The notes beneath the pieces are model-generated. The model saw only the letters and a list, made by a program, of their open reading frames with translations, did no database searches and had not been told where the DNA came from. From assembly GCA_048013815.1 (NCBI GenBank), contig CM106586.1:15686001-15750000 (forward strand): 64,000 bases of DNA, given 5' to 3'. Positions 4,570 to 54,390 of the stretch are shown one piece after another. The translations under genes were made by a program, and so were the position numbers. Position 1 is the stretch's first letter; each line of letters starts with the position of its first letter. The stretch is from Setoptus koraiensis (lineage: Eukaryota; Animalia; Arthropoda).

Positions 4570-4669
4570 AACTCGACAATAACTCGGGACAGTAACTCGA
4601 CGATAACTCGGGATAGTAACTCGAGAAAATAACTCGAGAAAATAACTCGAGGTAATAACTCGAGACAAT
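4570..4669. repeat. Imperfect tandem array of 8 AACTCG-cored units (11-13 bp)
   Basis: aactcgacaat aactcgggacagt aactcgacgat aactcgggatagt aactcgagaaaat aactcgagaaaat aactcgaggtaat aactcgagacaat. It starts 26 bp upstream of the NWD2 ATG. Confidence 0.9.
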
Positions 4670-8311: not shown

Positions 8312-8454
8312 GCAGCTCGACTATTGAATCGCAGGCAGCTCGACTATTGAATCGCGGGCAGCTCGACTATTGAATCGCGGGCAGCTCGACTGTTGAATCG
8401 CGGGCAGCTCGACTGTTGAATCGCGGGCAGCTCGACTATTGAATCGCAGGCAGC
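8312..8454. repeat. 23-bp minisatellite, 6 copies
   Basis: The unit GCAGCTCGACT(A/G)TTGAATCGC(A/G)G is repeated six times, followed by a partial unit. Confidence 0.95.
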
Positions 8455-8704
8455 GCAGTATTCACTTGACTGCACATTGAGCTCGCCTCGCTCCACGAAA
8501 CCCTGAGAATTTTTTACATGAACGAGGCTTGGCGAGTAACCTTTGCCAGTGGCCGTGTGAGATCGGGCCGTTCAAGGTCCGATCGCACTCTCGCTCTGTT
8601 GCGGCGGCTCTGTTGCGAGCCAGAGTCTCATCATGAGACAAACATGGCCAACACCGGTTTGCGCACTCAATTGTCCGACGAGAGATTTAATTGTGCTACC
8701 TCGG

Positions 8705-8788
8705 CAGCAGCAACAGCAGCAACAACAGCAACAACAGCAACAACAGCAACAGCAGCAACAGCAGCAACAACAGCAACAACAGCAACAA
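8705..8788. repeat. Mixed CAG/CAA trinucleotide tract (28 units)
   Basis: Read directly from the sequence. It accounts for the poly-C, A/T-rich and V/A-rich ORFs in the track. Confidence 0.9.
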
Positions 8789-10347: not shown

Positions 10348-10397
10348 AATCGCTCGAGGGAATCGCTCGAGAGAATCGCTCGACGTAATCGCTCAAC
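10348..10397. repeat. 13-bp tandem repeat, ~4 copies
   Basis: aatcgctcgaggg aatcgctcgagag aatcgctcgacgt aatcgctcaac. Confidence 0.85.
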
Positions 10398-10447
10398 AGA
10401 GAATTGGTCGGTGTCCGTTGCGCAGCGCACCGCAAAGTTGGCACTGC

Positions 10448-10527
10448 AACAGCGACAATCGAAAACAGCGACCATCGAAAACAGCGACGACCGAAAACAG
10501 CGACCGTCGAAAACGGCGACCAGCGAA
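10448..10527. repeat. 16-bp tandem repeat with a variable 3-nt centre, 5 copies
   Basis: AAC(A/G)GCGAC-NNN-CGAA with NNN = AAT, CAT, GAC, CGT, CAG. Confidence 0.9.
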
Positions 10528-11908
10528 AAGGCGCACTCCAAAACGAGCGAATTGTGCTCACAAAACGGGGCGAGCGTGTCGTCGAGACGAATGCGTTAAC
10601 ATGTTGGCGACGGCGACAGAGATGAATGTGCGCGACAGGTTCAATAATGATAATGCCATCATTATGATGGTGACAACATGAGCCCCTCGACCGTGTCGCC
10701 GCTGTCACAGCGAGTGTATGTGCAAACAGTTGGGTTAAACTGACAATTGTGAATCACTTTTTTCGCTCGTCTTGCCAAGATTGCTCTTGCGTCACCAGCG
10801 AGTGTCGCTGTCTGTGTTGTTGTTGTTGTTGCGAGCGGCGAGATTGCTGGCGAGAGTGTGCGCTGGCCTGTGCGTGTGTGTGTGTGTGCGCATCTTGTTT
10901 GGCGTGTGTGCGTCTCTCGTTTGTTGCGTCGTCGTCTCGCCGGTTGGGCAACAAGCGGACAAATTAGAAAGCAGTAGCCAGCTCGCTGCAGTGCAGCTTG
11001 TGTGAGTGGCGCATTAAAATAAACTGGCAGCCACCAGTGACTAGTCACTGGCAACTAGAGGGCCTATAGTGCCGGCCGCCACGCCAGCATGATAAGCCAG
11101 TGTGTGTGTGTACAGTGTATTACTATTGTTGTTGCCACTAGTCGTCATTAGTTGGCTGAGCACGGCATACACTCTGGCACAACACACTGTACTAGTTTGC
11201 GCGCACACTGGCATCCTTGACTCACAGCTCACTCAGGCTCGAGCCTCGAGCCTCGAGAGCACGGCATTCTCCGATCTGCCGTGGGCTCGCCGTGGCTGCC
11301 ACTACACAGTCTACTACTGTAGCACTAGTCTACTGTGGCACTACTACACTGTACACTATGTACTGTACACTATGTACTGTACATGCGGTGTAGTGCGCAG
11401 CTAGTAGCTACACTAAATGCTACACCTACGGGGCCTGTAGTTCAGGCATGTGCATGGTGGCCATGATGATCGTCGTGTCGAATCGCAGTGCGTCCAACAC
11501 ACACTCGACAGAATGTGTCCGACTCACAAGCCGCGACTCAGCGACACTTGAGTCGCTGAGCGCCGAGCCGCGCCGAGCCAGCCGGCGAGCCGCCGGCCTG
11601 GCCGCTGCCGGCTGTGAGTCGCGCTGAGCCGGATCGAACAAAACGCACACGGCCGGCACAGCTAATATTAGAACTGTGTGCGGTGTGCATTGCAACCAGA
11701 CTCTAGCCACAGTACTACTACTGTGACAGTAGACTGTAGCTCTACAGTAGACTCTACTGAGTAGAGAGACTCTCTAGTAAATAGCGGGCAAATATGGCGA
11801 TGGACACACCGAGAGAGAATTCGCTCGAGCGACACCAGCATCAGAGTAAAGTTCGATCGACACATTCGATACCAATAGTGGCCATTCATCATAGTTCGAT
11901 CAAGCCAT

Positions 11909-11910
<2 letters not shown>

Positions 11911-11946
<36 letters not shown>
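11911..11946. repeat. (AC)18 microsatellite
   Basis: Perfect dinucleotide run. Many shorter (AC)/(GT) runs occur throughout 5-30 kb. Confidence 0.95.
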
Positions 11947-11949
<3 letters not shown>

Positions 11950-14155
11950 TGTTATATTAGGCACTGTGCCGCTCGACACTGCAGTACACGCTTAGCTGGC
12001 TTGTAGCGCAATAGTAGACACTTGTGCACAGATCGTACGCTTTTAATTCGCATTTGAACACACATCGCTGGGTGTGTGTGTGCAATAACAACAAGCGATC
12101 TGTTTCATCATCATTATTATTATTATTATTATTCTATTTAATCCTATCGAGTTATACAAGCCCGCAATTATTGATTATATATTACATATTACATACACAC
12201 ACTATTGGTTATTACATACTGTAGATTAGCACGTATCGAGTCGTATAACAATACCAGCAATACATCAGTTAGCATTTATAATATATATATATTAATGCCA
12301 ATAAAAGATAATAATAACAGATAATAGCAATCGTCACAGTGAGTCGGATAAAGAATCTTGTCAGGGAGACACACAGAGAGAAAGAGAAAGAGAAATTGAT
12401 ATCGTCAACGGCGCCGCTCACACAGCACCAGATAACACAGCAGCAACAGCAGCGCCAACAGCAACAGCAGCGCCAACAGCAACAGCAGCGCCAACAGCGC
12501 CAGAAGCAGCGTTTTGTTTCACATATTTCACATATATCTATCTATTCACCCAAGAGTCAGATCATAAATAACTAAATTCTACACTACACAACAATCGCAC
12601 AGTCCGCCACAATTGGGACGCCACCACTGATAAGTCAGCGCACACTCATTTAGATACCATACCACACAATATATCACCACTGTTATCACACTACCACAAC
12701 CTTCATTATTGGTATATCACCACTGTTACTACCACTAAAAGAGATATTGTTAATGTTACTATATGAATATTACTACTATTTAGATATTGCCCATGTTGAC
12801 ATGTTAATAATCTAGAGATAAATTTCATTAGACACACACAAGAGAAGAACCCCCTACTTCACCTCAAGACGACCAACCATAATTAGTTATATATAATTGC
12901 ATATACCACACATCTGAATATAAATATATATATATATACATATAATTATATAATAATAGCAAGTATTCACATAGCCTGTACTCCACGTGATCAAGCGGAT
13001 AATTACTGTAGCTGCTGTTAAAAAGAGATCGATGAGCGAAAAGACAAAAGCCATACCCAATATTGTTACCATAAGTGAGTTACGCACAACACACACACGC
13101 GCACTCCTTTAAGCTTATTAGGCGAACATCTATAGTGAGGCACCGTCAACATTATCGTAGTCAAGTGAAGTGGGCAAGCCATCAGAGGTGATAGTAACGA
13201 CTTGACATTTATTCTAAATACAACAAAAGCGAGAGAAATAACGACAGAGAGTTAGAGAGAGAGAGAGCGACAGAGACAGCGAGAAAAATAGATAGAGAGA
13301 GAAAGGACGACCAGCGCATTATATGGAGGCATCTCAACACATCTAACAAAACAGCGAGCATTAAAAAAACATTTATAGTTGTTATTTTAGACACAGTGCC
13401 GAGCAACAACAACCGTAGCAGGCACTAAAAATCGATAGCAACAACACAGGCAACAACAACACCACTGGTAGATAAGCAACATCCAAAAAGCAGGTCCAAT
13501 AGAGTGATGAGCTTACGTTTGATAAGTAAAAACAAACTAATTATGTAACAGTAGTATTCGAGGAAAGACATGATTAGTATCCGCTAGTATAACTTGTTTA
13601 AACATTATGTTTATACACTAACATCATCCCACAGCAACCCTTCAACACTTACACGTACATTTCAAGAGTGTACAAGTGTTAGTGTATGTGTGTGTGTTAT
13701 TTTTGCTTGTTCGTCGATGCTTTATTGCGAGATATACACTTTAACACACTACCCCAAGAAGGTATATCACAAAACTTGATCAGAAGCGTATAAACACTCT
13801 AGTATTATACCAAAACACTTACTAGTTACACCACGATCATCACCATTAAGGCCGGCATCGATTGTTATCTTTGCCACCATTTGTTATTTATATCTATCTA
13901 AGTATCAATCAATATATACGTGTATTGATTATATATATATATATATATACAGTGGTATTTATAAATATATATCAGCGTAGACATACAAATGCACACACAC
14001 ACGAATAAACAAATATATCAGATGTACACACCTATCTTCGCATAGTACGTCGAGCATATCCCTCAGTCCTTGGAACAGGCTAATCAATTATCAATGATGC
14101 CTGTTTTGTCCAAGTCTCTGTTACTGTTGATATTGCTGTTTTAGTCGCCATTATT

Positions 14156-21800: not shown

Positions 21801-23536
21801 AGCGCTGTCGTTTGACGCAACACCAACAGCAACACTTTCGCGGCACAAACAACAAAAACTCTTCTGACGTAGTTGCAAACTTTTGATGTGTCGCCAATTA
21901 TCCGCCGACCAGTTAAACTTAATTAAATGTATTACATTGTATCGGATGGGTAGCGCTAGAAGGGTTGCACATAGTGTCAAGTAACTGTAATAATGCGTGC
22001 ATTGCGTGTGTTAAGCTGGCCGGCTAAAACAAGCAGCGGATGTTTAGTTTGGTTGTGAGCTCATGCACACGATTTGTTGGCAAATGTTAATGGTGAAATG
22101 TAATGGGCAACAATGGGAACAGTGTGAACAGTGAGCGATTTACAGTCAATCATAACAAGCTGGTGAATGGCAACAATGACAATGGTTGTATCTAGTCAAC
22201 AAGTGTAACACTTGTATGGGACATGGCATGATTATTGACCTTTTTTTAAGGCAGCTCACTAGTGGATAAGTCTGGTGGACTATGATAATGGCGATGATGA
22301 CGGACGCAATAATAATCTTTCGACGATCGATGGACGGTGCAAAGACGATCGAGATTATTGATTAGTTGTCTTAACAGGTTACGCAACACGAACAGAGTGA
22401 CGGCGCACTGACTCACAGGTGGACTGGTCATTTCTAATAAGCATCTAATGAGAATCTTCATTCTGGTCGTGGCCGGATGAGACGAGCTAGAGTGGTTATG
22501 TGAGCGCTGCCAAACAGGTGGACAGGCAGCCGGCAGGCAGCCGCCATAAAGGCAGAAAGCCGGCTGGACAGGTGAGCTCGATGATTGGTGGATAGAGCGG
22601 CCAGATGGAGTGATACAGTGAGACAGTGCGACCGAGCTGACAGTTTGAAACTGGTGGCGGTCAGTGTACTCATAAAGTTGTTGCCTGCGAGTCAGCCCAT
22701 TGCCTTTCAGCATTGTGCCTGGCTAACCCTTTATCATCATTCAGTCACTGAATTCCAGCCAGTGTGTGTGTGTGTGTGTGTGAGCATCCGGCGGCTATCT
22801 ATAGAGCTGGCCGGCACACAATCACTGGCCGGCCGGCAAATACACAAGCAAACGCAGAGGCAAACACACGGGCAAACAGGTGAGCGGGTGAGTCGGCCTG
22901 CCGGCTGATGTAAGCCGTTGATGCTGACCATCGAGCCCGTTTCACTCTTTACTCTCTCGGCGTTACACGATGATGATTTCTCTCATGCGAGACACCATCG
23001 TGGTGCAAGTTGTGTGCAAGTTGCAAGTTGCAAGCGTCGAACCAACCGATTGGACACACCACCGATCGAAGGAAACGCAGAGTGAGCGAGTGAGCACAAA
23101 CAACAAAATAAATAGTTTTAATAGTTGGTTGACAAACCACCGACAGCGGCGTCGAGGCGGCCAAGCCGAAGCCAATGCCGTGCTGGCCGAGGGGATGCGC
23201 TTGCATCAGCGCCTCACATTGTGTTGCGAGTGGCGACTTGCGACAGCGAGCAAGAGCCAACGACAGAGAGAGAGAGATCTATCGACTGTCATTGTGTCAG
23301 ACGGCGAGACAGATACAGAGAGAGAGAGAGAGGGGCAGCAGTGTTTGACGGCGAGCCAAACACTGCGGCACACAATACACAAAGTGTAACAAAGTGCCCA
23401 GTTTGCACAACAGCCAAGGTTGTGCCCGCGACCTATAGTAGACACATTTATGACAGCGCTGGACGGCCGGCTCAGATCCGGCTGCGGATGAGAAATATCT
23501 GATTTGATTAATTGACACTGCACTACAAGTTAGTTA

Positions 23537-23602
23537 GGCTGGCCGAGCTTGTCGGGCTGGCCGGGCTTGTCGGGCTGGCCGGGCTTGTCGGGCTGGCCGA
23601 GC
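23537..23602. repeat. 18-bp tandem repeat, ~3.6 copies
   Basis: ggctggccg(a/g)gcttgtcg repeated. Confidence 0.9.
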
Positions 23603-24591
23603 CCAACGAGCTTTTGTTGGGCGGCGGGCGGCGAGCTGCGAGCGACGCTCGCAGCCACAGGCCGGCCGAGCCCGAGCGAGAGGTCCGACCGGCTCCAGCG
23701 AGCAGCTCCTGTCAGGGGGCAAATAAAAGGGAAATTAAATAGTGCGAGGGCTCGCCTATTGCAGCGACTCTTGGGCCATTCATCTTGTTGCGTCATCGGG
23801 TCGTTGTGGCTGTCTGCAGAGGTTGTGGCTGTCTGCAGCGGTTGCTGTCGTTGCTGGTGCCGCCGTCGTGGCTGGTGCCGCTGCGCCGACCAGAGTGGCG
23901 CGCCGGTCATCCTCTGGCACGACGCCGATCTGTCCAAATCTATCTAATCAGCGGACGACGAATGCGAATGGCGCATTTATAGTCGGGCTCTAGAAAAGTT
24001 ATCATCATCACTGGCTAAGTGTGTGTGTGTGTGTTCGGCAAAATTGATTATCTATCGGTGACACGAACATTAGCCGATTAGTGGCCGGGCGCGCAGCCAG
24101 ACGAGCGGCCGATGATGGTATTAGCCTAAACGCGGCGCGCCAGTCTAGCCCGTCTAGCCCGTCTAGCCCGTCTAGCCGGGAGGAAGTGGGCTTAGTTTGT
24201 GTTTGTTATGTGTTTGTGCTGGCTTCTTTGTTCTCCGGCTGGCGCGACCTTGGCGACTTGACAGGCTCGTCGTAGCTTTTAGTTGGCTACTGCGAGCGGC
24301 ACGAGATTAGACGCAACAGCAGCGATTCGCAATTGAACGCCAGCGAGCCACAGCGACAACAGTTGTGAGACAAACGACAAAAATGACTAATCTAATGCAA
24401 TAATGTGAGTGATGCTGATGAATGTGTACTCGTTATTGTTGTCGCTGCCGCTAGCCAGCCAGCCAGCCAGCCAATAAACGCGCCAAAAGAGCCTATACGC
24501 CAATTGTGTACGCAAGCCGCGCACACACAGCCTAGCGTAAGTCGCTATGTCCGCGTCGCGCCGCGCCGCGTTACGTCACAGGCCGACAAAT

Positions 24592-24634
24592 GTAACTGTT
24601 ACTGCGCGTAACAGTTACTGCGCGTAACAGTTAC
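24592..24634. repeat. Three near-palindromic GTAAC(A/T)GTTAC units separated by TGCGC
   Basis: gtaactgttac tgcgc gtaacagttac tgcgc gtaacagttac. Confidence 0.9.
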
Positions 24635-26385
24635 GTCTGTCTTGGCTGCTGCTGCTGCCGCTGCAGCGACAACAATTGATGGGAGCTTGTTTTGCCCGTC
24701 GCGAGTCGTTGTGCAACAACCCCGAGACAAATCAAGCTGCATTATTGTTGGCGTTGCTGTTGTCGTTGGCGGCGAGACACCCGACGGCCGTTCAATGTTG
24801 AGACCCGTTCGGGGGCGTCGCGTTCAATGTGCGCCAGTGCGACTAGTGCGAGCATGCATTTGTTGGGCTTTGCCACCCATTGAATGTGTGCCGGCGAACG
24901 AAGACGACGCTGTTAATCGCGCCATCATACATGGGATCGCTATTGATTTGATATGATGGCGAACGCCGACAACAGCAACGAACGCAGCCGACTGGCTAAC
25001 GGCGACGACAACAGCAACTCAACAGCCAGCCCGAGCAACAAACTAAACAGCTCACAAGCAAACAATCTATCTATTCAAACAATCTACGCAGCAACGGCAG
25101 CAACGGCAACATTTTCTCGCTTGCCGTTGTTGGCCTTAAAAAGCAGCTTGCGACTGCAATGACACACAAACTCTATTTCAAGGAAGTGAACACACAGCAT
25201 TAATCAGGCAGCGCCAGCAACAAGCAACGCTGCCCATTAGTCATGATAAGCGCCGAGCGCCCGTTTTGGGGTCTCGCCCATCGCGCCGCCGAGCCAACTG
25301 TGTCGTCGTGCGCAAGCCGGTCTCGCCGAGCTCATCGTTGTTTTTGTCGTCGTCGTCGTCGTCGTCGTCGTCGTGGTTGTTGCTGTTGGCACCCTAAAGT
25401 CTGAAAGTTGCTCCGAGTTTGTTCCGAGTTTGTTCCAGTATCCGCCGCTGCCGCACTAAGCGCTGACAATTGTGAGCAATGAGCTACGGTAATTGGGCAG
25501 AAAGGGTTCAGAGGGCTCTGCCGGCATCGAGCGCCGAGCGCGCTGGTCGGGGCGCGCAGTTGCGCAGTCATTATATTATTATCATTGGGCCGCTTATGCC
25601 CATACAAGGCCCAATGATAATAAGGCGCCCAATGATCCGTTGCTCACGAGCGGCCGGCCGGTCACAGTCACAATAGGCTCGCCGGTACCTGGCCGAGCGC
25701 CACTGTCAAGCTGCGTCGATAGGGCTCTCGGGCTGGCAGCCCGTCGCAACTTTGGCCCGGCTCAACCGGGCCGCCTGTGTCTTCAATGTGCCTCTGTCTG
25801 TATACTATACAGTGTATACTATACAGTGTATAGTGTGCGTATTATGACAACTAATTAGCGCCACCGTCTATGCAACAACCGCTAACAATCACTTACAGTT
25901 TGTTAGGCGGATTGCGTGCGCTTACACACACGCTATCGACATGTTGACATTTGCTGACGCTGTCGTTGTTGTCGAAGCTGTCGTTGTTGTTGAAGCTGTT
26001 GTTGTTGTCGCTGCTGCCGCCGTCGTTAATTAACGGCACAGCGTCGGGCAGCAAAATGATGACTGCCGACTTTTGATCGATGGCCAAGAGTGTGTGCCGA
26101 TCGTTTGCCGATGAAATAAATGTATCAAGTGGCCGGCGCTCAACCTTTTATGCGCCCTCAATGGCCGCTTTAGTATTGAGTGGCGCTTTAATTCTGAGCG
26201 GCGCTGTTGAGCGTATTTTGTGCCTAAATTGATCCGCTGGCTTTTGTTGCCGGCGCAACTATCGCTCGATGCTGGCTCGACTATTGCGTCGCTAAATGCT
26301 GGCTCGACAGCGCTCGTCGGACAGCGGACGGCGCGACACACGATGACGTAATGATGACGACTGCCGGCTCACAAGTTGCCGGCCC

Positions 26386-26386
<1 letters not shown>

Positions 26387-26426
<40 letters not shown>
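26387..26426. repeat. (AC)20 microsatellite
   Basis: Perfect dinucleotide run. Confidence 0.95.
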
Positions 26427-26429
<3 letters not shown>

Positions 26430-26916
26430 GCGCTGCTTTAGCCCTTTTATCACCGGCCTGCAACTTTAAACGGACTGTGCGCCGGTTTGTCCAAACACTG
26501 ACGTGACGACTGGACGTTTGGCTGTGCCAAACACTTACCGAAGCCGTACCCTGGCTGTCGCAGTCCGACAGTCGCCGTTGAACAGTCGCCGTTGAACAGT
26601 CACTGTTGAACAGTGTGTGTTACCGGTGATGGTGCGTTGCCGGCTTGCGCAACACAAAAACTGTCTAACCGATTGTCACACCCTATGGCGTAATGATTGT
26701 GGCAAGGTAAATGTGAGCGAGTGTGTGTACAATGTGTACAAGCTAGAAACAACAATGTTACTATTTATTTGTGCACAATGTTCGGATGGGACACACTCGA
26801 CTCGCTGCCAGCCACTGTCAGCCACTGCCAGCCACTGCCAGCCACTGCCAGCCACTGGAGACAGGTGCGCCGCCATAGGCACGCCGCGGTGCAATATGCC
26901 ACACGATATCCAGCCA

Positions 26917-26962
26917 CTAGACTCTAGTAGCTAGACTCTAGTAACTAGACTCTAGTTACTAG
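26917..26962. repeat. 14-bp tandem repeat with a CTAGACTCTAG near-palindromic core, ~3 copies
   Basis: ctagactctagtag ctagactctagtaa ctagactctagtta ctag. Confidence 0.8.
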
Positions 26963-27176
26963 AGCCTGGCTGCTAGCAGCGACAGTCTTGCCGCTGCAGT
27001 CTAGCCACAGTGTTGTCAGTGTGCTGCTCATGCGACAACACTACCGGTGCACGGCGGCGATCACCTTAGCGCGCACACAATGTAACTACTCGCGAGCGCC
27101 TGACGGGGGCGCTGCCGGCCGGCGCAGACCGTCCGACGCCTGGCCCCGCTCTCTCTCTACTGACACTACTCTCTAC

Positions 27177-27364
27177 TTGTGAGTAGAGTCTACTCACAAC
27201 GCACAAGGCATTGTGAGCAGAGTCAACTCGCAATGCCTTGACTCACTGTTGCAACAACAGTGCTGTTGTCTGGCCGCCGTCTGGCCAGCGCCAGTCCGCG
27301 GACAATTGTCGGCCCGGCGGTCTCAGGGCCGCCGCCACAGATCATTGCACGTCGTATTACGACG
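27177..27364. other. Chain of consecutive short inverted repeats
   Basis: ttgtgagtag/ctactcacaa, caaggcattg/caatgccttg, cactgttg/caacagtg, ctggcc/ggccag, gacaattgtc palindrome, cggccc/gggccg, cgtcgta/tacgacg. Confidence 0.8.
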
Positions 27365-28957
27365 GTCGTAATGTAAGCCTTTGGGCACACGATCACTGTG
27401 CACGGTAGACAGACGCACCACTAATCATAACTCAAGGCAGCAAGGCGTTATTATTGCAAGTGTGCACATTGTATAGTTGGCGAGAAGAAGAGGAACAAGA
27501 AAATGGATAAGCGCCCTCGCTTGTCTGAGCCTAATACTTATGTAATGAGCGTTGTAAGCTGTTAAGCCAATCAGGCTGTGTGTGTATTTTTATAAAAGTA
27601 AAGTATTATTACGACGTACAATATATATATATATCCACTGCTGCCGCTGCTGCTACAGTGCAAGTCATGATTTGCAGTTTGCAGCCATTACACAACAGGC
27701 TATCCAAACACACACACACAGCAACAGCGTCTGCAAGCGTGCCTATCATCTGTGACCTGGAGCGCAGTGTGTGCGCGGCGTAGCCGGTTCTACAATGTTC
27801 GGCCATGTTCTTGTATGCTGAACATGGTAAATGTTGCATGTTGCATGTCGTGTGTGTGTGTGTGTAGCGCAGTGAGAGTGGAACAGCAGCCGAGGGTTAA
27901 CCCTTTGGCTGCTGCCTATAGACTCTGTAGTATAGACGCTGTAGTATGGACGCTGTACTACAGCGGCTGTAGTATGGACGCTGTAGTCGGTAGTATAGAC
28001 GCCGTAGTATAGAGCCTGTTTAGAGGCAGCTGAACGTCGCACAAACGACGTCGAACAAAGCCAATGGCACACACGCCGGCCTCTGTGCCAATGGCGGCTC
28101 GTCCTCGTTTAGCTCGTTGGTGGCGGCTAGCCGCGTTGTTGTTTCATGCGTTGCTGTTGCTGTTGCTGCTGCTGCCGGCGCTGCCAGTTATCGCTATACG
28201 AATGGCGATGCAAGCTGTTATATAGTATCCAGTGTGTGTTCGCAGGCCGACTTATTTCGGTCTGACAACGTTCACACTGCATGCACAACTGACATAAAAC
28301 TGGCTGCAATACACAATGTAGTATTATTTGTGCACACACACTGCACAGCCGTGTTGTGTCGCTGCCGGGCCTGGGTGGCTGACTCAAGCCCAGCAACATG
28401 ACATTTACGCTAGCGAGGCTGGCCTTGTTGCGTTATGGTCGGCGCCGTAGTTACACAATTTTTCCTCAAGGAGTTGGCCCACTTGCTGGTGCCGTGTGTA
28501 CAGCTTGTGGCGCACACAAGCAGCGCACCCGAGCTCCCTCTATGCGTGCTGGCCCAACTATAGTTGGCGTATGTTTGAGTTGCCAGGCGCAGGTTGGCGA
28601 GCGCAACGACACAAGTTGTGCCTGACACACAAGTTGCGAGCCGGCGTCGACTATTGCGATACAACACAACGCAACCAAACTGCACGCTATTGTGGCCAGC
28701 TGTGTGCCTAATTGTGATTAATGGGTTCAGGCACAGGCCGGTTTGAGCGCAACATTCCTACTAATGTGCAGCACAGATTGGCAAGCCAGCGGTGATGTAG
28801 CCTACATCATGTAGGCTGTGTGTGTGCGGTTGTGTTTCGCTCAACGGCAACGCCAGGCCACAACACACACACTCACATATTTCCCCCTTTAGTCGCCTAT
28901 CGCAGGAGTCCCTCTTTTAGTCTTTGTGTGTGCGCTACTTCTGTGTGTCTGCTGCTG

Positions 28958-39627: not shown

Positions 39628-40944
39628 ATGGACAATCAAGGACGGAAGATAATTGTTTGTGACAATGGGACCGGCTTTATAAAATGTGGCTATGCCGGCT
39701 CAAATTTTCCCCTTAAAACCTTTCCTTCACTCGTAGGTAGACCAATAATTAGAGCAGTGAATCGTATTGACGGTATTGAAGTCAAAGATCTTATGGTAGG
39801 CGACGAAGCAAACAAATTACGTTCCTTATTAGAATTGTCCTATCCTATGGAGAACGGTATTGTTAGGAATTGGGAAGATATGTGCCATGTGTGGGATTAT
39901 ACCTTTTTTGAGAAAATGCAAATTGATCCAACCGACTGTAAGATACTCTTGACCGATCCACCCATGAATCCAATATCAAATAGAAGAAAAATGTTGGAGA
40001 CCATGTTCGAGAAATACGGCTTCCACTCGGCATACATTGCCATTCAAGCTGTACTCACTCTTTATGCTCAAGGTAAATCAACCCTCTTTTCGCACTGATA
40101 TTCTGTTATTCAATGTTTTCCACATTATTCAATATTATCTTCAACGTCTTATCATGTTTCTCATATGTATATACGAATGGTAGGTCTTCTAACTGGAGTT
40201 GTCGTGGACAGTGGCGATGGAGTAACTCACATTTGTCCTGTCTACGAAGGCTATGCCCTACCGCATTTGACCAAAAGACTAGATATAGCTGGACGTGACA
40301 TAACCAGATACTTGACCAACCTATTAAGGCTTCGTGGGTACGCCTTCAATCACACAGCAGATTTTGAGACAATCAGAATGCTAAAAGAGAAATTGTGTTA
40401 TTGTGCTTATAATGTGAAACAAGAGCAACTACTTGCAACTGAGACAACCTATCTCACGACACAATACACTCTCCCTGATGGACGAGTGATTAGGCTAGGA
40501 GGGGAAAGGTTCGAAGCAACAGAGGCTTTATTCCAGCCACATCTAATCAATGTAGAAGGCCAAGGCATTGCAGAGTTATTATTTAATACAATTCAAAGCG
40601 CTGACATGGATATCAGGAGTGAATTATACAAGCATGTAGTATTGAGTGGGGGCTCAACAATGTATCCAGGTCTCCCTTCAAGGCTAGAAAAAGAACTAAA
40701 GCATCTGTATCTAGACAGGGTCTTGAATGGGGACTATGAGAGATTGCAAAAATTCAAAATACGTATCGAAGATCCTCCAAACCGCAAAGATATGGTATTC
40801 ATTGGTGGAGCAGTATTAGCTGAAGTGATGAAAGACAAATCTGAATTTTGGTTGTCCAAAGAGAAATACGAAGAGATCGGCATTGAAAGGCTCATGTTTC
40901 TGAAATATGGTACCGCCAATGCACATAATACTAATGTAATGTAA
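39628..40944 (+). CDS. ACTR2: Actin-related protein 2 (Arp2/3 complex)
   Basis: Exon 1 is 39628-40072 ([28 protein letters not shown]...[11 protein letters not shown]). A 111-nt GT-AG intron spans 40073-40183. Exon 2 is 40184-40944 ([23 protein letters not shown]...[21 protein letters not shown]). The Arp2-specific motifs are intact. Confidence 0.97.
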
Positions 40945-41308: not shown

Positions 41309-42250
41309 TCAATCTTTCTTGCCTGATTTACTTAACGAATCCAGTTTACCGTTACGAGAGTCGGCAGTCTTTCCAACTAGATGATGATGATGATGATGAT
41401 GATCCCCACCAATCGCGGCCCTACTACCTGGGGCCGATGAGGTGAGCATTTGTTCTAGAGCATCCCAGATTCCTCCGAAGAACACTGCACAAAAAAGATT
41501 CTCAAAAGGGCCGAAAGGATTCTGAATTCCCAATAAGATTGAGGACAACTTGAAGTATATTAATACAAACACCACAACTGAATATACGAGTGCATGTGGC
41601 GCTGATAAAAGGTCCGTTTTCTTGTCAACTAAAAATAATATCGAGGCTGCAATAGATGCCTTGGTAGCGAAGGTCGGTTGCATAAATTCTATGGCATTCG
41701 GTGTCCATAATCCGCGAAACATTCGTTCAAGCACTTTGAGAAAACCAGAACCGTTACCTTTGACTGCGCCAATCAAGACTATTATGAAATAGCTGCTTGG
41801 ATAAATGCGCGCCGCATGTAGAACTCCATGGTGAATCTTATGACATCTATTGATCTCTTTCATGCTTGACAATATTAATTTGATTGGCAAAAAGTTGCAT
41901 AATTTATAAACCAGATCGAAGGGCGAATAGAATATAAGGTACCAAACTGCTGATGCGATTAATACTTGTTGTGTGTTCTTGAAAGCTCCTACAATTGGTT
42001 CATTAAGTAGAAAATTCGCTAGTATAGTGCCAGAAAATGTAGAAAGCATACAGGAAAGCCAACACGATAATGGATGTTTTCTAGAGAAGAGAATGGCCGG
42101 CTTATTCTGATGACTAGCTGGTCCAAAATCTGCTTTGATGTACATGCAACAAATGATTACATGACAAATATCGAAATATGGAAACATCTCCAATTTGTAT
42201 AGGCGATTTGCGTAATCTATGACCTCCATTCTGCTGTCTGTGACCTCCAT
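41309..42250 (-). CDS. TMEM38B: Trimeric intracellular cation channel (TRIC/TMEM38), intronless
   Basis: The first ATG is at 42250. Motifs: MFPYFD..H..., FSRKHPLSCWLSCML..FSG..LANFLLNEP, WYLIFYSPFD, KEINRCHKIHHGV, VKGNGSG, LGIQNPFGPFENLFC. Confidence 0.93.
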   Translation of the reverse strand: MEVTDSRMEVIDYANRLYKLEMFPYFDICHVIICCMYIKADFGPASHQNKPAILFSRKHPLSCWLSCMLSTFSGTILANFLLNEPIVGAFKNTQQVLIASAVWYLIFYSPFDLVYKLCNFLPIKLILSSMKEINRCHKIHHGVLHAARIYPSSYFIIVLIGAVKGNGSGFLKVLERMFRGLWTPNAIEFMQPTFATKASIAASILFLVDKKTDLLSAPHALVYSVVVFVLIYFKLSSILLGIQNPFGPFENLFCAVFFGGIWDALEQMLTSSAPGSRAAIGGDHHHHHHHLVGKTADSRNGKLDSLSKSGKKD

Positions 42251-43234
42251 TCCTAACCAATTTTTCAATTGTTGTATAAGTGACGGTGTCTGACTCGGAA
42301 ATCGAATGTAGCTATTATTCGAGAACTGTCTTGATAATAATAGCACAGATTTTGATTAAGTCCATACACGCCCGGTTGGAGTTGGTTCTTGTGTATTCGA
42401 CATATACACGCCAAATTGAATCGATTAACACAACAACAATGATTATATAACATTCATCGTGATCAAGCTTAAATTAGCATCTATACAAAGTAACAATAGT
42501 GCTTCTTTGTCCATGTAAGACAAACACACAAATTTAGCCTTTCGCACGCAAAAAGCACAAACATTTATAGGGGGCATATAGAGCTCGCGATCTAGAAATT
42601 CCTCTATATCCCTTTAACAAGCAATCTTGCGGCTTGTCTTATATGTCTATCTTCTTCAACAGCCCCACAGCCTTTCAAAGTTGGCGCTTAACATTTAGTC
42701 TAAGGTAAATGGGAAGAGCACAAAGTCTAAGTGACAATGGATAAACTGATTTATAGAACCTCTGACGTTAAATGAACCATGTTGAAGTAGCTTAAAAAGA
42801 GTAACTTACTCGAGCAGTATACTCAGTATAGCATAATCACGCGGTTGAGCAACAAACATCTCCTTGTTAATAAGCATGCATAGAATATGATGAAGGCCCT
42901 AGTGCTGGGCCACGCTTCCAGAGTTTGACCTACAATACTGAATACATTTAATACGGGTTACATGTAGATCCTCGTTGCGTCATTCTCAGGACTCAATCAT
43001 CCGATTTGATCTTAGCCCTACAAGATTGATTGAGAACTTCTTAAGGGGAGTTGGCAATCAGAATTGGCAGCAATTTTTCTTCGATTCTTTCACTTAACAC
43101 CTCATTATGCATCTAACAGACTGCGATTCATCTCAAAACTCGAGTTATAACGAAATCAAGCAGAGATAAACAGAAATCCTGTTTACAGATTCGCATTATG
43201 AACTGCTATGTTTTTTGATCAATTTTCTGTCGTT

Positions 43235-43543
43235 GAATATTGACAAATAAAGTACCGACTTTATATTGAATCTTGTTTCATTGAAGTGACACCATGGATA
43301 TCGATGATATCAAATAGGAATGAGTTGAGTGTCAATTCATCGATTTGAGTAGAAAAATTTTCGAATGCAGCAAGTCAATCTTGGTCTGAAATTCAGGGTG
43401 TCAATTGAAACAAAATTCAATCTAAAATCTCAAATAGATGAATTGACACTCAACTCAATCCTAATAGATATCATCGATATCCAAGGAGTCACTTCAATGA
43501 AATAAGATTCAATATAAAGTGGGTACTTTATTTGTCAATATTC
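43235..43543. mobile_element. 309-bp foldback / MITE-like inverted repeat
   Basis: Arms 43235-43341 and 43437-43543 are reverse complements at 100 of 107 positions, and pairing continues imperfectly into the spacer. No target-site duplication is obvious, so mobile origin is uncertain. Confidence 0.55.
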
Positions 43544-43772: not shown

Positions 43773-45167
43773 ATGCATCCTCACGCTCATCAGCTACATC
43801 TGATGACACAGCAACATGCCGGGCTACCGCCAGCGCCTCCGCCAACATTTGTTGAACAATATTCTCATTTATCAACAGTATTATCCGATCATGGAGGCAG
43901 GCAAGCCGCCACTGTTCCCATACCTGTGTCTGCTCTTAAATTTGACGAATCCGAAGAGCTCCTTTGGATGGGTAACACATTTGGCCATGTTACATCTTAT
44001 TATAGTGATCAGTTAACAAAATACACCTCATTCGCCGTAACCCAAAGTGAACCTATTTTGCAATTAATCACTGGCGATTTTGGTCTATTGTGTCTCGCCA
44101 AAGACGAGCTTAAATTGAAACACAGGAGGGGACCGCCAATATTCTCATACAGCTCAACAACATTGCGTGATATGTTATGCATGTCAAGGCAACCTTCTCA
44201 GATGATATTGTTAGGTGGACAATCGCAAACATTGATTGAATTTGATTTGGAACGTATGCGTCAAGTCAGAAGTACAGATCTTGATTCTAAGGAGAACGGT
44301 TGCTGTATTATTCATCAACATCCAAAATTTGTCTGTTGTGCCGATCTAAGTGGTCGTATAACATTGCGTAGTACTAATAATTTGAACATCAATCACTCAT
44401 TTGCGACCCATTCCGGGCAGATCTCAGATTTTGATGTTCATGGCAATTATCTCGTCACTTGTGGCTATGCTGCCGGCAGACCAACACCCGATAGACTCTT
44501 AATGGTATACGACCTGCGGACTTGCCGGCTTGTCACGCCTATTAGATCACCATTTCCTCCAGTTCTATTGAGATTTGTGCCAGCTTTTACATCGAAATTT
44601 TGCCTTGTATCACCCATGGGCGAATTTCAGCTGCTCGATTGTGCAGCAAGTGCCGTCGACAACTGTACAGTCTACACACATCAAGTTCAGATGGCACCCG
44701 AGGCAACCATTACCTGCATGGATGTCTCTTCTAGCGGTCAAACCATTGCATTCGGTGACAATCTTGGCCTCATCAATCTCTACGGCACCACCACCAATGC
44801 TAGTTTCAATCAATATAGCCGGCCAACAGAATTCCCTGATCCACAGGACCCTGTTCCACCCATAGATGCCAATGATTACATAACTCCTCTGTCTATTGTG
44901 CCGCAGACTTACTTTGATCCATATGATAAATTGATCTCAGAAACTATGCGCGATTATGATACCGGTAAACATTATAGAGTACCTAAAATAGATCCGAAAA
45001 TACTGGAATCCATGCACAATCGAGGCGATGTCGGTTACGCTGCAAATCCTTTCAAAAACCAAGGACGCATCTCTTATATACGAGGAAGAATCGGCGTTGT
45101 GGGTTTGACAAAAATCTCGGATGATGACTTCGAAACTGTTACCGAGCCAGTCGAAGACCACGATTGA
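43773..45167 (+). CDS. PAN2: PAN2 deadenylase subunit, N-terminal WD40 plus PAN3-interacting linker only (no UCH-like or DEDD nuclease domain)
   Basis: 464-aa intronless ORF with PAN2-like motifs: FDESEELLWMGN..GHVTSYY, HSGQISDFDVHGNYLVTCG, L.VYDLR, LLRFVPAFTSKFCLVS..GEFQ, DVSSSGQTIAFGD..G.I.L, F..YSRPTEFPD, PKIDPKILESM...GDVGYAANP. It stops at ~aa 464. Confidence 0.85.
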   Translation: MHPHAHQLHLMTQQHAGLPPAPPPTFVEQYSHLSTVLSDHGGRQAATVPIPVSALKFDESEELLWMGNTFGHVTSYYSDQLTKYTSFAVTQSEPILQLITGDFGLLCLAKDELKLKHRRGPPIFSYSSTTLRDMLCMSRQPSQMILLGGQSQTLIEFDLERMRQVRSTDLDSKENGCCIIHQHPKFVCCADLSGRITLRSTNNLNINHSFATHSGQISDFDVHGNYLVTCGYAAGRPTPDRLLMVYDLRTCRLVTPIRSPFPPVLLRFVPAFTSKFCLVSPMGEFQLLDCAASAVDNCTVYTHQVQMAPEATITCMDVSSSGQTIAFGDNLGLINLYGTTTNASFNQYSRPTEFPDPQDPVPPIDANDYITPLSIVPQTYFDPYDKLISETMRDYDTGKHYRVPKIDPKILESMHNRGDVGYAANPFKNQGRISYIRGRIGVVGLTKISDDDFETVTEPVEDHD

Positions 45168-45210
45168 AAACCGATACTTAAATGCGCAGCAAATAGAACT
45201 CCGTATAAAA

Positions 45211-45564
45211 CTATTATTAGTAAGACAGTTCTCGAATAATAGTTACATTCGATTTCCGAGTCAGACATCGTCACTTATACAACAATTGAAAAATTGGTTA
45301 GGAATGGAGGTCACAGACAGCAGAATGGAGGTCATAGATTACGCAAATCGCCTATACAAATTGGAGATGTTTCCATATTTCGATATTTGTCATGTAATCA
45401 TTTGTTGCATGTATATCAAAGCAGATTTTGGACCAGCTAGTCATCAGAATAAGCCGGCCATTCTCTTCTCTAGAAAACATCCATTATCGTGTTGGCTTTC
45501 CTGTATGCTTTCTACATTTTCTGGCAACCATGCTAGCGGATTTCATTCGTTCATTGAGAAATGA
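45211..45564 (+). pseudogene. Inverted 5'-partial duplicate of TRIC/TMEM38
   Basis: 45211-45526 is the reverse complement of 42343-42028 with 5 mismatches in 316 bp. The copied ATG is at 45304. Homology then breaks with a 1-nt insertion and the frame stops at 45564 (NHASGFHSFIEK*). Confidence 0.92.
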
Positions 45565-45714
45565 TTTCTCTTCTCAATGAACAAATTGAATCCTCAAGTA
45601 GAAAATCCAGACACTGTATTAGCGGGGCGACAGCGATTAAAGGAATGGCTTGCTCATTCTAACGACTAGCTAGTCCAAAATGCTTCGGTATACATGCAGC
45701 AAATGTTTGCATGA
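45390..45714 (+). ncRNA. Candidate long hairpin RNA (hpRNA / endo-siRNA precursor) derived from TRIC
   Basis: The outer stem pairs 45390-45464 with 45642-45714: 61 Watson-Crick pairs, 5 G:U, 7 mismatches and a 2-nt bulge. The inner stem pairs 45538-45560 with 45571-45593 at 21 of 23 positions around a 10-nt loop. Expression cannot be shown from sequence. Confidence 0.45.
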
Positions 45715-46192
45715 GTATGCTCCCCGACTGAGCAATGGATAATTCTATCGCTCCGTCTCGGATTTCTCAGATCACTCTGGGGCTTTACTCTGTATATACT
45801 GGTCATATTCCAAAGTATCAACTATTAAATGACAGGCTTAATCGAGGTTTTTAGCCAAATTCTCTTCATGAACGTCGTCCATCATCAAAGTCACCGATCG
45901 AATGTTTTCCTACACTTCATAGAGTAGTCTCTCTCATTTTGAGTCCATCTCGAGGCATCTGTCGAAAGTAGTTAAGTCAATAAGTCAAAGGAGCACAAGT
46001 CACTCTCGCTTAGATTTAAAGTCGGTGCATTGAATGAAGAGGAATTTATCTTGAAAATAAGAAAGCAACATTTGAAGGAGTTTTACTGTAGACCAATCTT
46101 TGGAATGCTATATGGCATCTATGAATGGCATCATTATGTGTCTTGTCATGATGGCTTGATAGATATTAATACTTGGCATGAGGTAAAAAAAT

Positions 46193-47566
46193 TCAGAGCT
46201 TTCCAACTAAACCGCTGACCAGAGTAATTGCTCTCTTTCTGTTCTCGGGAAGCTGCATCCTCTCACTGATGGCCTTCATTTTGACCGGAATATCTTTATC
46301 TGACAGTAGTTTTTCAATGGCTTCCAATAGTTGTTCCTTTGTACAGTTATATGGATCCAATCTTATTCCGAGACCTTTCTCTTGAATGCGCTGAGCATTA
46401 TCGAATTGGTCAGCAAATAATGGACAAATAATGAAACCTGGCACACCTAGGAAAAAACACTCTGTAATAGTATTGTTTCCACCGTGTGTAATGACTAGAT
46501 CTACAGACTTTAATACTTGGAGTTGTTTCACAAACTTTTGGCCCCACATATTTGGCGGTAGTTCATACTTGTCATGTAGGGGCCCTTTAGTCACTATGAA
46601 TCTGTGAGGGCAATCGGCCAGCATGGATGTCAGTCGTTGCATCAGGCTCACCTCGGCACTTGCCAATGATCCTAATGATAGGAATATCAGCTTACCTGGC
46701 TTATCTTTTAGGCAATCTGGTAACTCAAATTTAGCCTCGTTGACAGAGTCGCGAACCATTGAATCGCAGCGTTCCCAATCCTTCAGTGGATACTCTATGT
46801 GATAATCCAATTCTTCTGGATACATGTAAAGATTCAACCAAGGCGATAAAGGTATAAAGCTCATAGGATTCGTCGGTAAATCCTTATCCTGGCCATTGGA
46901 TCTCCAATAGGCATTGTATTCGTCGTAGATGAATTTTTTCGCTTTATGGGCCCTCTCAACCATTGACTGTTGGTTCTCATCATCTTTGTTCCAGTTGGTG
47001 GGTAGGCCCAAACAAGCAGGAGGTAAATTTGGATTGTCATGTAATGACAAAGGCGTTGCTGAAAATATCCGTACCCAAGGTGTCGAATGCTTGAACAATG
47101 CTGGAATGGCGAAATAATGGTCAATCACAATCAGATCCGGTTTCAATAAGTCTACCTTCTTCTCTATGATACTATTGTATTTGTAAATGTCTTTGACCAT
47201 CTCGTAAAAACCCAACTTGATCTCTTGCTCGTAATTAGCAATAACATCGCCTGATTTCCAAATTTCTCTACAATTCATTATGACTGTATTCCATTTATCT
47301 TGGGCTGTATCGATTGATTTTGATTCTTCTAAGCCATCCGTAGTACAATCATAGACTTCGTGACCATTTTCTTTCAGGTTGTTCTCAATGGGATCTAAAA
47401 ACAAGAATACAGTGCGATGTCCAAGAGTTTTCATATGGTTGGCCATACTCAAGAGGGAGTTTATATGGCCCAAGGAGTCAAGTGGCGTAAAAAGAATAGT
47501 TTTCTTCTTTTCACGTTTATTCTTCTTGAATATGTTTTGTAGTTTTTCTTTCAAATTTGAGAACAT
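46193..47566 (-). CDS. UDP-glycosyltransferase (GT1), bacterial MGT-like / mite-type, intronless
   Basis: It has the catalytic His motif TILFTPLDSLGHIN, DLIVIDHYF, LIFLSLGSL, and the UGT signature WGQKFVKQLQVLKSVDLVITHGGNNTITECFFLGVP..PLFADQFDNA. It lacks the signal peptide and C-terminal TM helix of canonical animal UGTs. Confidence 0.93.
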   Translation of the reverse strand: MFSNLKEKLQNIFKKNKREKKKTILFTPLDSLGHINSLLSMANHMKTLGHRTVFLFLDPIENNLKENGHEVYDCTTDGLEESKSIDTAQDKWNTVIMNCREIWKSGDVIANYEQEIKLGFYEMVKDIYKYNSIIEKKVDLLKPDLIVIDHYFAIPALFKHSTPWVRIFSATPLSLHDNPNLPPACLGLPTNWNKDDENQQSMVERAHKAKKFIYDEYNAYWRSNGQDKDLPTNPMSFIPLSPWLNLYMYPEELDYHIEYPLKDWERCDSMVRDSVNEAKFELPDCLKDKPGKLIFLSLGSLASAEVSLMQRLTSMLADCPHRFIVTKGPLHDKYELPPNMWGQKFVKQLQVLKSVDLVITHGGNNTITECFFLGVPGFIICPLFADQFDNAQRIQEKGLGIRLDPYNCTKEQLLEAIEKLLSDKDIPVKMKAISERMQLPENRKRAITLVSGLVGKL

Positions 47567-49231: not shown

Positions 49232-50122
49232 ATGATGGAACAAAGAATATGTCAATATTCTGGTTACAGCTTACAATTTTACTCATGTTTCCCTCTTATT
49301 TTGTTAGCTAACACGTATTTCAAGTCAAACTTTTATACCTATATCTGTGCCATAGGAACTGCACCCTCTGTAATGTATTTGCTTGCCCAACTGGCGGATG
49401 CTGGCCATCTAAAGCTAGAGAAACATTCTGAAACTGATCATATTCACTCTAGTCAACAGACCCTGGGCGTGATATGGAGATCTCTTTTACTTGGTTTACT
49501 TCTCACGATAGGACTGGCCATCGTTATCCAGGGTTCCTCAGAGTTCCTGAGCCTAGGATTGTATTTGTGCACACTATCATTCTTTCATTTCAGCGAATAC
49601 TTCATCACATCGCTAAGCAATCCGGCCAATCTGTCCACAGATATTTTCCTTATCAATCAATCAAATGCTTACACTCTAGCTACCCTGGCCAGTTTTGCTG
49701 AATTCTTTCTAGAATTCTACTTTCTGCCACATAACTGGTTTGGACAATTCAAGAAATTAACATTGTTTGGACTACTAGTCTGTTTAATTGGTGAATTAAT
49801 GAGAAAATCAGCAATCCTGACAGCCGGCCAAGGTTTTACCCATATCATATCTACAACTCGTCACCCGGAGCATGTACTGATAACTCATGGTGTTTATAGC
49901 TTGATGAGACACCCGTCTTACGCTGGATGGTTTTATTGGGCATTAGGCACACAGTTAATTTTACTAAATCCTGTCTGTTTTGTTCTATTTATGGTTGTTG
50001 CATGGAATTTCTTTCAGGAACGCATACCATACGAGGAGGACATTCTGATAAAATTTTTTGGCCAGTGTTATCACAAATATAGAAATAAAGTTCCTGTTGG
50101 TATTCCATTCATTAAGACTTAA
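49232..50122 (+). CDS. ICMT: Protein-S-isoprenylcysteine O-methyltransferase
   Basis: 296-aa multi-TM ORF with LSFFHFSEY, FLINQS.AY, GELMRKSAILTAG..FTH, HVLITHGVYSLMRHPSYAGWFYWALGTQLILLNP and ERIPYEE..LIKFFG..Y..Y...VP.GIPFI. Confidence 0.95.
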   Translation: MMEQRICQYSGYSLQFYSCFPLILLANTYFKSNFYTYICAIGTAPSVMYLLAQLADAGHLKLEKHSETDHIHSSQQTLGVIWRSLLLGLLLTIGLAIVIQGSSEFLSLGLYLCTLSFFHFSEYFITSLSNPANLSTDIFLINQSNAYTLATLASFAEFFLEFYFLPHNWFGQFKKLTLFGLLVCLIGELMRKSAILTAGQGFTHIISTTRHPEHVLITHGVYSLMRHPSYAGWFYWALGTQLILLNPVCFVLFMVVAWNFFQERIPYEEDILIKFFGQCYHKYRNKVPVGIPFIKT

Positions 50123-52219: not shown

Positions 52220-54390
52220 ATGGAATGCCCACATCTTTGTAAATTTGATAAGACATTAACCTCACCCAATTTGAGAATTCTCAATAACATTAAAACCATA
52301 GGCAAAAGTAACAAGACTACACAGAGTAAACGTTCTCAAAACAACATCCAGCATTGTTGCAAAGGTAACACATACATATAGCAATTTATTTCAGCGAATG
52401 ACTCTCTTGTGACACACACATGAGCAACTGATCAACTTAACTTCCTCTTTTCACTTTGCTTAGTTTGTAAATCGGACAGATCCCCATGGATGTGCGTTAT
52501 TTGTGGCCAAATTCACTGTGGAAGGTATATATAACCATATCTCACACAAGCTATAGAATTTTCCACACTAACATGTGTTAGACGCTAGCTCATAAATACC
52601 TCTTCTTGAAATCCCATTGTCACCCCAGATATGTGAATAGTCACGCCAAGGCTCATTATGAAGAGAATGATGGTCATTTTTTGGCGATCTGCTGTCATAG
52701 TAGATCTGCATTCTGGTAAGTGCTTGTGAAATGAAGAAGCCTCTTTCGAACCTTCATTCTGACTATTCTCGCTAAACGTCATCTTATAATTTCTATTTTC
52801 ATCATATTCTCCTATTCTCATACAGCTATGCATGTGATGATTATGTGATCAATGAAGTACAATCCAAAAGAATACAGCTCACGCTTGATCAATTACAGAA
52901 AAGTGATCCAATAGAAAATTCTAGTAATAGTGATGATCCTCAAAAAATACCAGTTGACGATCAAACTCCAAAGGTATATATCTTTCTACTGATTAGTCAG
53001 AGCATACTTAGCTATATTTGAATTGCTAGACAATCATCATTTGTATTATCCATTTACTTTCAGAGCTCTGCTTTAAAGACAAGACGTCTCAAACTGACTG
53101 GGATCAAGAATCTTGGAAATACTTGTTACATGAATAGTGTCCTACAATGTCTTAGCAAGATTCAATTGTTCACATCGTCGGTTGGACAACTCAGATACTT
53201 CAATGAGGACAATGTTGTAAATGATAGTAAAAAGAGGAAGCTAATGTCAACCACAGCCTCAAATGTTCCAAGATCCGAGTTGTGAGTATCTTGAACATAT
53301 CCAAGCTGATTCTCCGAACAGCGCTTTTTGTTTGTCTAAGCAAACTGACATTTTTCAACTTATGCTTGTTACTTCCATCCATAATAAGACTTTTCGAGGC
53401 TTTAAGGGACACATTATATTTGATCAAGAAGAGCGGAAAGTCCACCATCAAGCCTGAATCATTATTTACGATGGTAAGACAATATCGAAGAATTGGGCTC
53501 AATTTATAATTTACACCAATACTCTTCATTCACATCTTTTTTTATTTTTTTTTGTTCACCAGTTATGTAAAGTCCCCAGATTCAGAGGCTATCAGCAACA
53601 AGATGCTCATGAATTTTTGCGTTATGTCCTCGATCGCCTACATCAAGAATGTCTGGAAAATTGTCCGGTCCCTGAGAAAAAGGCTAATATGTGCTTCAAT
53701 GGTGGGATCGAAAGTAAAAAGGCCTCAATAATTGGAAATATTTTCGGCGGAATTTTGCAGAATGAAGTTAATTGCCTTGAATGTGGTTTCAAATCTCATA
53801 AATTCGACCCATTCTTAGATTTGTCTCTTGATATCCCAGTGCAACGAGCTACAGCAAATTTTGATGCAACATCATCAGACAACTCCAATTCATCATGCTC
53901 GTTGACAGATGAATGTCATCTTATCGACTGTCTCTCAAGCTTTATAGAACTTGAGGAATTAACCGAAACTGAGCTCTATTATTGCTCTAATTGTCAACAA
54001 AAACAGCGCTCAACCAAAAGGTTCTGGATAAGACGTCTACCCGATGTATTGTGTCTGCACCTCAAGCGCTTCAGATGGAATAATTATTTGCGTACGAAAT
54101 TGGACAATTACATAGAATTTCCAATTCAAGGTCTAGACATGAAGCGATTTGTTATGTCTAGCAAGCATGAGACCAGAGGCAGCTCTTGTGGGCCAACTAC
54201 TTACGATTTAGTTGCATTTATAGAGCATCATGGTTCGGGAGCCGGCTCAGGCCATTATACAGCATACGCCTATCATGACAAGTTCTGGTATCACTTTGAT
54301 GATTCCAGTGTCACTCCATGTGATGAAAGCCAAGTAAAACAATCAAAGGCCTATATTTTATTTTACAGTAGAAGAACGAATTTAAGTTAG
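52220..54390 (+). CDS. USP3: Ubiquitin carboxyl-terminal hydrolase 3-like (ZnF-UBP plus USP domain)
   Basis: Seven exons join in frame: 52220-52364, 52464-52524, 52629-52715, 52826-52973, 53064-53281, 53389-53473 and 53563-54390. Motifs: N-terminal MECPHL, ZnF-UBP ([34 protein letters not shown]), Cys box [31 protein letters not shown], and His box [22 protein letters not shown]. Confidence 0.92.

Follow-up and report, generated by a model that had tools for sequence, protein, structure and literature searches.

Fold-back inverted duplications are seeded at short inverted repeats, with later revision of the centre and homogenisation of the arms by gene conversion. In Drosophila, hairpin RNA (hpRNA) loci are defined by Dcr-2-dependent 21-22 nt siRNAs and by a primary transcript whose level increases in dcr-2 mutants, and the hpRNAs described give siRNAs that are fully complementary to their targets (PMC10317233). 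The de novo hpRNAs of D. simulans are young and species-specific and sometimes lie beside the progenitor gene; one of these, Dsim-hp58, comes from exon 2 of CG17385 and was born one gene from its progenitor (PMC10317233). As to eriophyoid mites, the genome paper on Aculops lycopersici reports neither a clear AGO2 or R2D2 nor any RdRP, and its authors suggest that the siRNA pathway is missing or non-canonical (PMC7738191). The unit analysed here, built from the 5′ end of a TRIC channel gene, had been taken in a preliminary description for a candidate hairpin RNA directed against TRIC. Our analysis favoured another reading, which we consider probable though well short of certain, namely that the unit is an ageing fold-back copy of a TRIC fragment, one arm of which was recently overwritten by gene conversion, and that it is an ordinary DNA relic.

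The unit lies in a window of 64,000 nucleotides (the whole stretch of DNA that was analysed), which is eukaryotic and comes from a 48.7-Mb assembly of two contigs with nearly intron-free genes. These genome features and the homologues of the neighbouring PAN2 gene fit an eriophyoid (gall or rust) mite. The elements surrounding the unit are as follows.

39628-40944, plus strand: Arp2-like actin gene (open reading frame list and Pfam search)
41309-42250, minus strand: TRIC (TMEM38-type) channel gene, the parent, a single exon (Pfam TRIC, E 7.6e-78; open reading frame)
42012-42343, minus strand: segment of the parent TRIC gene that was copied (93 nt upstream of the ATG and the first ~80 codons)
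43235-43543: MITE-like fold-back, between TRIC and PAN2
43773-45167, plus strand: short PAN2 gene, WD40 domain and linker only, 464 aa (Pfam PAN2_N, E 5.5e-56)
46193-47566, minus strand: UDP-glycosyltransferase (UGT) gene, convergent (open reading frame; Pfam UDPGT, Glyco_tran_28_C and EryCIII-like_C)
49232-50122, plus strand: ICMT gene

The ATG of the parent TRIC gene is at 42250, and the listed open reading frame extends to a GTG at 42346. Three other TRIC paralogues are present in the genome, and these were rejected as the source of the copy, being only ~50% identical to the parent TRIC in amino acid sequence. Paralogues were located at G000:C1:19248613-19253522 and C1:12036354-12037318; two of them stand in tandem 4 kb apart, and one has a stop-interrupted N-terminal piece immediately upstream. 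The UGT gene faces the hairpin with its 3′ end, at a distance of 479 nt, and it matches the bacterial-type families Glyco_tran_28_C and EryCIII-like_C besides UDPGT. A bacterial origin has been proposed for spider-mite UGTs. Elsewhere in the window, positions 1-12000 and 22000-28000 form blocks of 52-57% G+C against a background of 37-41%; these blocks hold no open reading frame of at least 200 aa and have (GT)n/(CA)n runs at their flanks, and the G+C-rich stretch 23500-26000 is single-copy in the genome.

The best named match of the PAN2-like reading frame was a 481-aa entry from Aceria tosichella, at 67% identity; dozens of (eriophyoid) assemblies gave homologues of 437-542 aa that are 60-69% identical. 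In the closest relative, PAN2 (L022:7935-9530) also ends just before a convergent UGT gene. Because of these homologue lengths and the position at which the relative's gene ends, the short protein of WD40 domain plus linker is, judged by the predicted proteins, the normal form of PAN2 in eriophyoids, and the gene is not the recent fragment that it had been called; only its last residues are clipped. The sequence ceases to be homologous to that of the relative at 45148, which is 19 nt short of the PAN2 stop (45165-45167), and the conserved C-terminal tail, including a motif kept in other eriophyoids, is missing here; thus, the rearrangement clipped the 3′ end of PAN2. A search of the 48.7-Mb assembly with Pfam UCH_1, RNase_T and PAN2_N found no UCH-like/exonuclease half of PAN2, and the predicted gene content suggests that the lineage has lost the catalytic part of this deadenylase. 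The best candidate loci were USP36/42-like, USP7-like, DUSP-USP, REXO-like and ERI-like, none of them PAN2, and a downstream UCH reading frame (53617-54387), considered as the remainder of PAN2, proved to be an ordinary USP.

The unit itself was resolved into the following segments.

45149-45210, no strand: filler between the break in PAN2 homology and the TRIC copy, holding the last PAN2 codons and the stop
45211-45526, plus strand: young sense copy of the TRIC 5′ end, 98.4% identical to the parent
45527-45543, plus strand: old sense-arm remnant that continues the register of the young tract (14/17 identical to the parent)
45544-45562, plus strand: small secondary inverted insert, antisense-like (shuffle p ~0.03)
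45563-45588, plus strand: second old sense-arm remnant, 21/26 identical to the parent sense sequence, a score reached in 0/2000 shuffles
45584-45714, plus strand: old antisense arm, equivalent to parent 41993-42164, with ~15-19% substitutions and ~41 nt net deleted

Both arms of the hairpin descend from the TRIC 5′ end, and in this sense the structure is derived from its supposed target. The sense copy, earlier described as near-perfect, is the reverse complement of parent positions 42028-42343 over 316 nt (98%, 5 differences) and spans 93 nt upstream of the TRIC ATG plus ~80 codons, its portion 45390-45526 forming the 5′ arm of the hairpin. Its identity to the parent is 99-100% up to 45526 and then falls abruptly to ~80%, still collinear: the last 137 nt before 45526 carry 1 difference, and the 18 nt that follow carry 3 substitutions and 1 indel. 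Since this abrupt drop occurs in register with the parent, position 45526 would mark the edge of a recombination tract, as opposed to an independent insertion. The old sense pieces that remain have diverged as much as the antisense arm, and the second of them, 45563-45588, terminates at a copy of the parent's CAATTG palindrome (6 nt, in the TRIC coding sequence), where it overlaps the antisense piece 45584-45606. The meeting of diverged sense and antisense arms at CAATTG points to a fold-back inverted duplication.

On the antisense side, 45643-45681 matches parent 42091-42129 at 85% and 45584-45606 matches 41993-42015 at 83%. The diverged antisense copy with a deletion, placed earlier at 45571-45714, is thus present, but its borders had to be revised: it starts at 45584 rather than 45571, because 45563-45588 is a diverged sense piece, and it ends opposite parent 42164 and not ~42175. 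Within the small inverted insert, 45545-45558 repeats part of 45571-45588 in reverse complement, including the base that is derived there relative to the parent, which argues that the insert is a later, local template-switch copy. The near-perfect inner stem and its 10-nt loop, both of which are present as described (loop 45561-45570), exist because of this insert.

A test of the flanks 45149-45210 and 45715-45900 as diverged continuations of the copy showed no TRIC similarity (p 0.69-0.91); the filler 45149-45210 resembles neither the region upstream of the parent (p 0.69-0.80) nor the relative. The assembly contains a single instance of the TRIC-derived structure. A transposon with a captured gene fragment was considered and rejected: no terminal repeats surround the unit, and both it and the DNA on its right are single-copy. 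An Rfam scan of 44800-46300 matched no family.

The history of the unit was examined against the closest relative, on whose syntenic contig (L022) PAN2 and TRIC are 96% and 98% identical in amino acids, respectively. This contig is collinear with the window from Arp2 to ICMT, on both flanks of the hairpin, and its 973-nt spacer between PAN2 and UGT contains no TRIC-like sequence and no such insert. Divergence of the two genomes at 4-fold degenerate sites is p 0.35 and K 0.48, which corresponds to ~0.24 for each lineage. Of 140 aligned positions, 26 distinguish the old antisense arm from the sense arm or the parent (K ~0.21; overall ~0.17-0.21), a value near the neutral 4-fold rate; the changes in this arm are rich in transitions and accompanied by several deletions, and within the outer stem the two arms differ at 11/72 positions. 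Every difference that could be polarised by the relative is derived in the antisense arm. The young tract, by comparison, is 1.6% (0.016) different from the parent. The K of the old arm, which is below 0.24 per lineage, fits an origin after the split, in agreement with the lack of the insert in the relative, and these values fit an old palindrome that dates to somewhat after the split and a young tract roughly ten times younger. Of the earlier view that two duplicates of different age had been combined, the difference in age stood, the arms being ~tenfold apart in divergence from TRIC, but the data are better described by one old fold-back whose sense arm was later converted.

The relative also bears on a site at which both arms share a variant (GTATA/TATAC) that is absent from the parent and that had been presented as preserving the pair. 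The variant does exist in both arms. T is found in the sense copy, in the antisense copy and in the relative's TRIC, and C occurs only in the parent; the shared T is ancestral, and the C of the parent is a derived, synonymous TAT>TAC change. Since the relative's TRIC also has T, one change in the parent explains the site and compensation is unnecessary.

Either strand folds into a ~325-nt hairpin with z of about -13 to -15. The plus-strand RNA of 45380-45724 gave -138.6 kcal/mol versus -77.8 +/- 4.5 for shuffles (z -13.4), and the minus-strand RNA gave -148.8 kcal/mol (z -15.5), which is better by 10 kcal/mol. The fold strength is far beyond chance, yet the pairing reflects the shared descent of the arms. 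The outer stem, 45390-45463 against 45643-45714, contains 61 Watson-Crick and 4 G:U pairs, 5 A.C and 2 transversion mismatches and a 2-nt gap, close to the 66 of 73 pairs (5 G:U) counted earlier. At 85% identity it is better preserved than the arm's middle portion. The transitions that separate the arms appear on the plus strand as 8 G:U versus 7 A.C, and nothing in the G:U counts or in the folding favours the plus-strand RNA. Near the original centre, the arms diverged independently. With the shared variant ancestral, the G:U and A.C counts at 8:7, the relative devoid of the structure and the arms independent at the centre, no selection on pairing was detected, nor was any found on the matching of hairpin and target.

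From these data we infer the following order of events. Once the lineage had split from its closest sampled relative, part of the TRIC 5′ end would have been copied as a fold-back inverted duplication, in which copying turned at the CAATTG palindrome and the product landed behind PAN2, replacing its last codons and 3′ flank. Both arms would then have decayed freely, and a secondary, local template-switch copy would have made the tight inner stem. At a far later stage the intact TRIC gene, which lies at a distance of 2.9 kb, may have overwritten the sense arm up to 45526 by ectopic gene conversion, possibly through synthesis-dependent repair that copied past the outer end of the old arm. Such a course would leave the sense arm 98% identical to the parent and the antisense arm still old, with the hairpin as a by-product that may ride passively on PAN2 or UGT transcripts and is most likely inert.

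The weak point of this scheme is that the young tract exceeds the surviving antisense arm by 179 nt, which calls for an original that was asymmetric, for deletion afterwards, or for repair synthesis that went past the homology and was end-joined at 45210/45211. The persistence of the hairpin over ~0.2 substitutions per site in a streamlined genome also counts against an inert reading, as do the better preservation of the outer stem and the position of the locus, where read-through from PAN2 (plus strand) or UGT (minus strand) could transcribe it.

We also estimated how often such structures occur in this genome, by a blastn self-comparison of evenly spaced samples of the other contig, 200 kb in all, together with the window. 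The sample holds several local inverted duplications, among them head-to-head genes for papain/cathepsin-type cysteine proteases (L027:1214-4195, arms ~1.1 kb, 92%) and head-to-head polyubiquitin genes (L034:2404-7168, arms ~1.3 kb, 83-89%). Local inverted duplication is a common class of mutation in this small genome, and the TRIC unit adds to the evidence for it; conversion of inverted duplicates after their formation appears to be a mutational process that recurs here. Two further repeats were observed. The fold-back at 43235-43543 (~320 nt, with 115-nt arms that are 93% complementary and a 79-nt spacer) recurs at least 4 more times on its own contig, including a 98% match at G000:C2:1465996-1466317, and resembles a low-copy MITE. 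An ERI/3′hExo-like exonuclease gene has a partial duplicate in direct orientation 2.3 kb upstream of the full copy (L018:1548-1871 and 3889-4641); this duplicate comprises the first 14 residues and a later stretch of ~82 residues, without the ~53 residues between them.

Among the alternatives, two independent duplications, in which an old antisense fragment was joined later by a separate sense insertion beside it, would account for the ~tenfold difference in divergence between the arms and for the 179 nt by which the young copy runs past the old arm, a stretch that has no trace of an old counterpart on the right. Against this, the young tract joins the diverged sense sequence exactly in the register of the parent, and a diverged sense piece reaches the CAATTG centre with a match that none of the 2000 shuffles attained; since that piece extends up to the palindrome, a sense arm already existed. 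It is also improbable that the same 330 nt of one gene should land twice, adjacent and in opposite orientation, in the absence of homology. We therefore consider two separate duplications quite unlikely, and retain a single fold-back with one converted arm.

A silencing role for the hairpin, with both strands taken together, is unlikely; its only evolutionary support is lost with the ancestral variant, and the unit is probably inert. Of the two strands, the minus strand would serve such a role better, and still this is distinctly doubtful. Here, read-through from UGT would yield a hairpin or antisense RNA, one arm of which is 98-100% antisense to TRIC, and conversion would maintain the match between guide and target. 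Over 316 nt, the reverse complement of 45211-45526 is indeed 98% complementary to TRIC mRNA, and exactly so over ~113 nt (45414-45526), the minus strand has the better fold, and neither AATAAA nor ATTAAA occurs on it between the UGT stop and the hairpin. However, read-through from UGT is purely hypothetical, recent conversion explains the high identity more simply, and the 10 kcal/mol difference between the strands rests on the near-even 8 versus 7 transitions. The relative, moreover, is without the locus, and TRIC, 98% identical in amino acids to the relative's orthologue, gives no sign of conflict-type evolution; it is a conserved, housekeeping-type gene, unlike the young conflict-type targets usual for hpRNAs (PMC10317233). 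A stronger version, in which recurrent conversion from TRIC refreshes the minus-strand guide arm (the first ~80 codons) while the passenger arm decays, as an hpRNA-like system in eriophyoids that lack AGO2, R2D2 and RdRP, strikes us as a long shot.

The plus-strand version proposed in the preliminary description, in which the hairpin is the 3′ UTR of PAN2 and is diced so that small RNAs of the 3′ arm silence TRIC, is very improbable. Several of its premises were confirmed. The fold is stable, and the unit begins 44 nt past the PAN2 stop on the same strand; downstream of this stop the plus strand has no AATAAA, and its first ATTAAA is at 45636, inside the 3′ arm, with the next at 45824. Since no earlier poly(A) hexamer is present, PAN2 transcripts may include part or all of the hairpin. 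The genome contains three Dicer-size reading frames and ~10 Argonaute/Piwi-domain genes, counted at family level, and the architecture resembles that of Dsim-hp58 (PMC10317233). The siRNAs from the 3′ arm, proposed to be antisense to TRIC mRNA, would match it poorly: all 21-mers of 45561-45730 have at least 3 mismatches to this mRNA, and no exact antisense stretch exceeds 11 nt. In addition, the supposedly compensatory site is ancestral, the G:U counts show no bias for the plus strand, the relative lacks the structure, A. lycopersici is without clear AGO2 and R2D2 (PMC7738191), and no RdRP that could amplify weak triggers was matched in the genome in a search that had no positive control.

An assembly artefact, from a chimeric or fold-back read or a mis-joined haplotype, is scarcely credible, for even though the locus occurs once in the assembly and no second sample of the species turned up among exact look-ups of six reading frames or in an exact 26-mer scan of metagenomes, technical fold-backs are near-perfect and these arms differ by 15-19% with several indels, the sense copy departs from the parent at 5 sites, and the flanks are collinear with the relative on both sides.

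If the unit produced TRIC-directed small RNAs, target-derived hpRNAs would gain their first example outside insects, from a mite lineage presumed to be without a canonical siRNA pathway, and with conversion keeping guide and target matched. Read instead as an aged fold-back with one converted arm, it is a clean and datable case in which a fold-back, a revised centre and a conversion tract combine to look like a "designed" hairpin that seems to carry a compensatory change, and in which polarisation by an outgroup removes that apparent signal.

Set beside the hpRNAs of Drosophila, the TRIC unit, like Dsim-hp58, is a young, species-specific inverted repeat from a fragment of a protein-coding gene one gene away; it forms a long intramolecular duplex, and its arms are homologous to such a gene. 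As the de novo hpRNAs of D. simulans are also young, youth alone is no evidence against function. The Drosophila loci are defined by siRNAs and transcripts, whereas the TRIC unit is defined here by sequence. Their siRNAs are fully complementary to the targets, whereas the plus-strand guide arm of the TRIC unit has at least 3 mismatches per 21 nt, and a near-fully complementary guide would arise only if the minus strand were transcribed. The Drosophila hpRNAs act on young testis or conflict genes, in contrast to the conserved TRIC. With palindromic fold-backs the unit shares arms that meet at a 6-nt palindrome, a centre with a small inverted insert, and one arm with a sharp-edged tract of high identity to a nearby homologue. 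It differs from them in its arms of ~0.13-0.38 kb and in the putative donor of conversion, which would be the parent gene 2.9 kb away and not the other arm.
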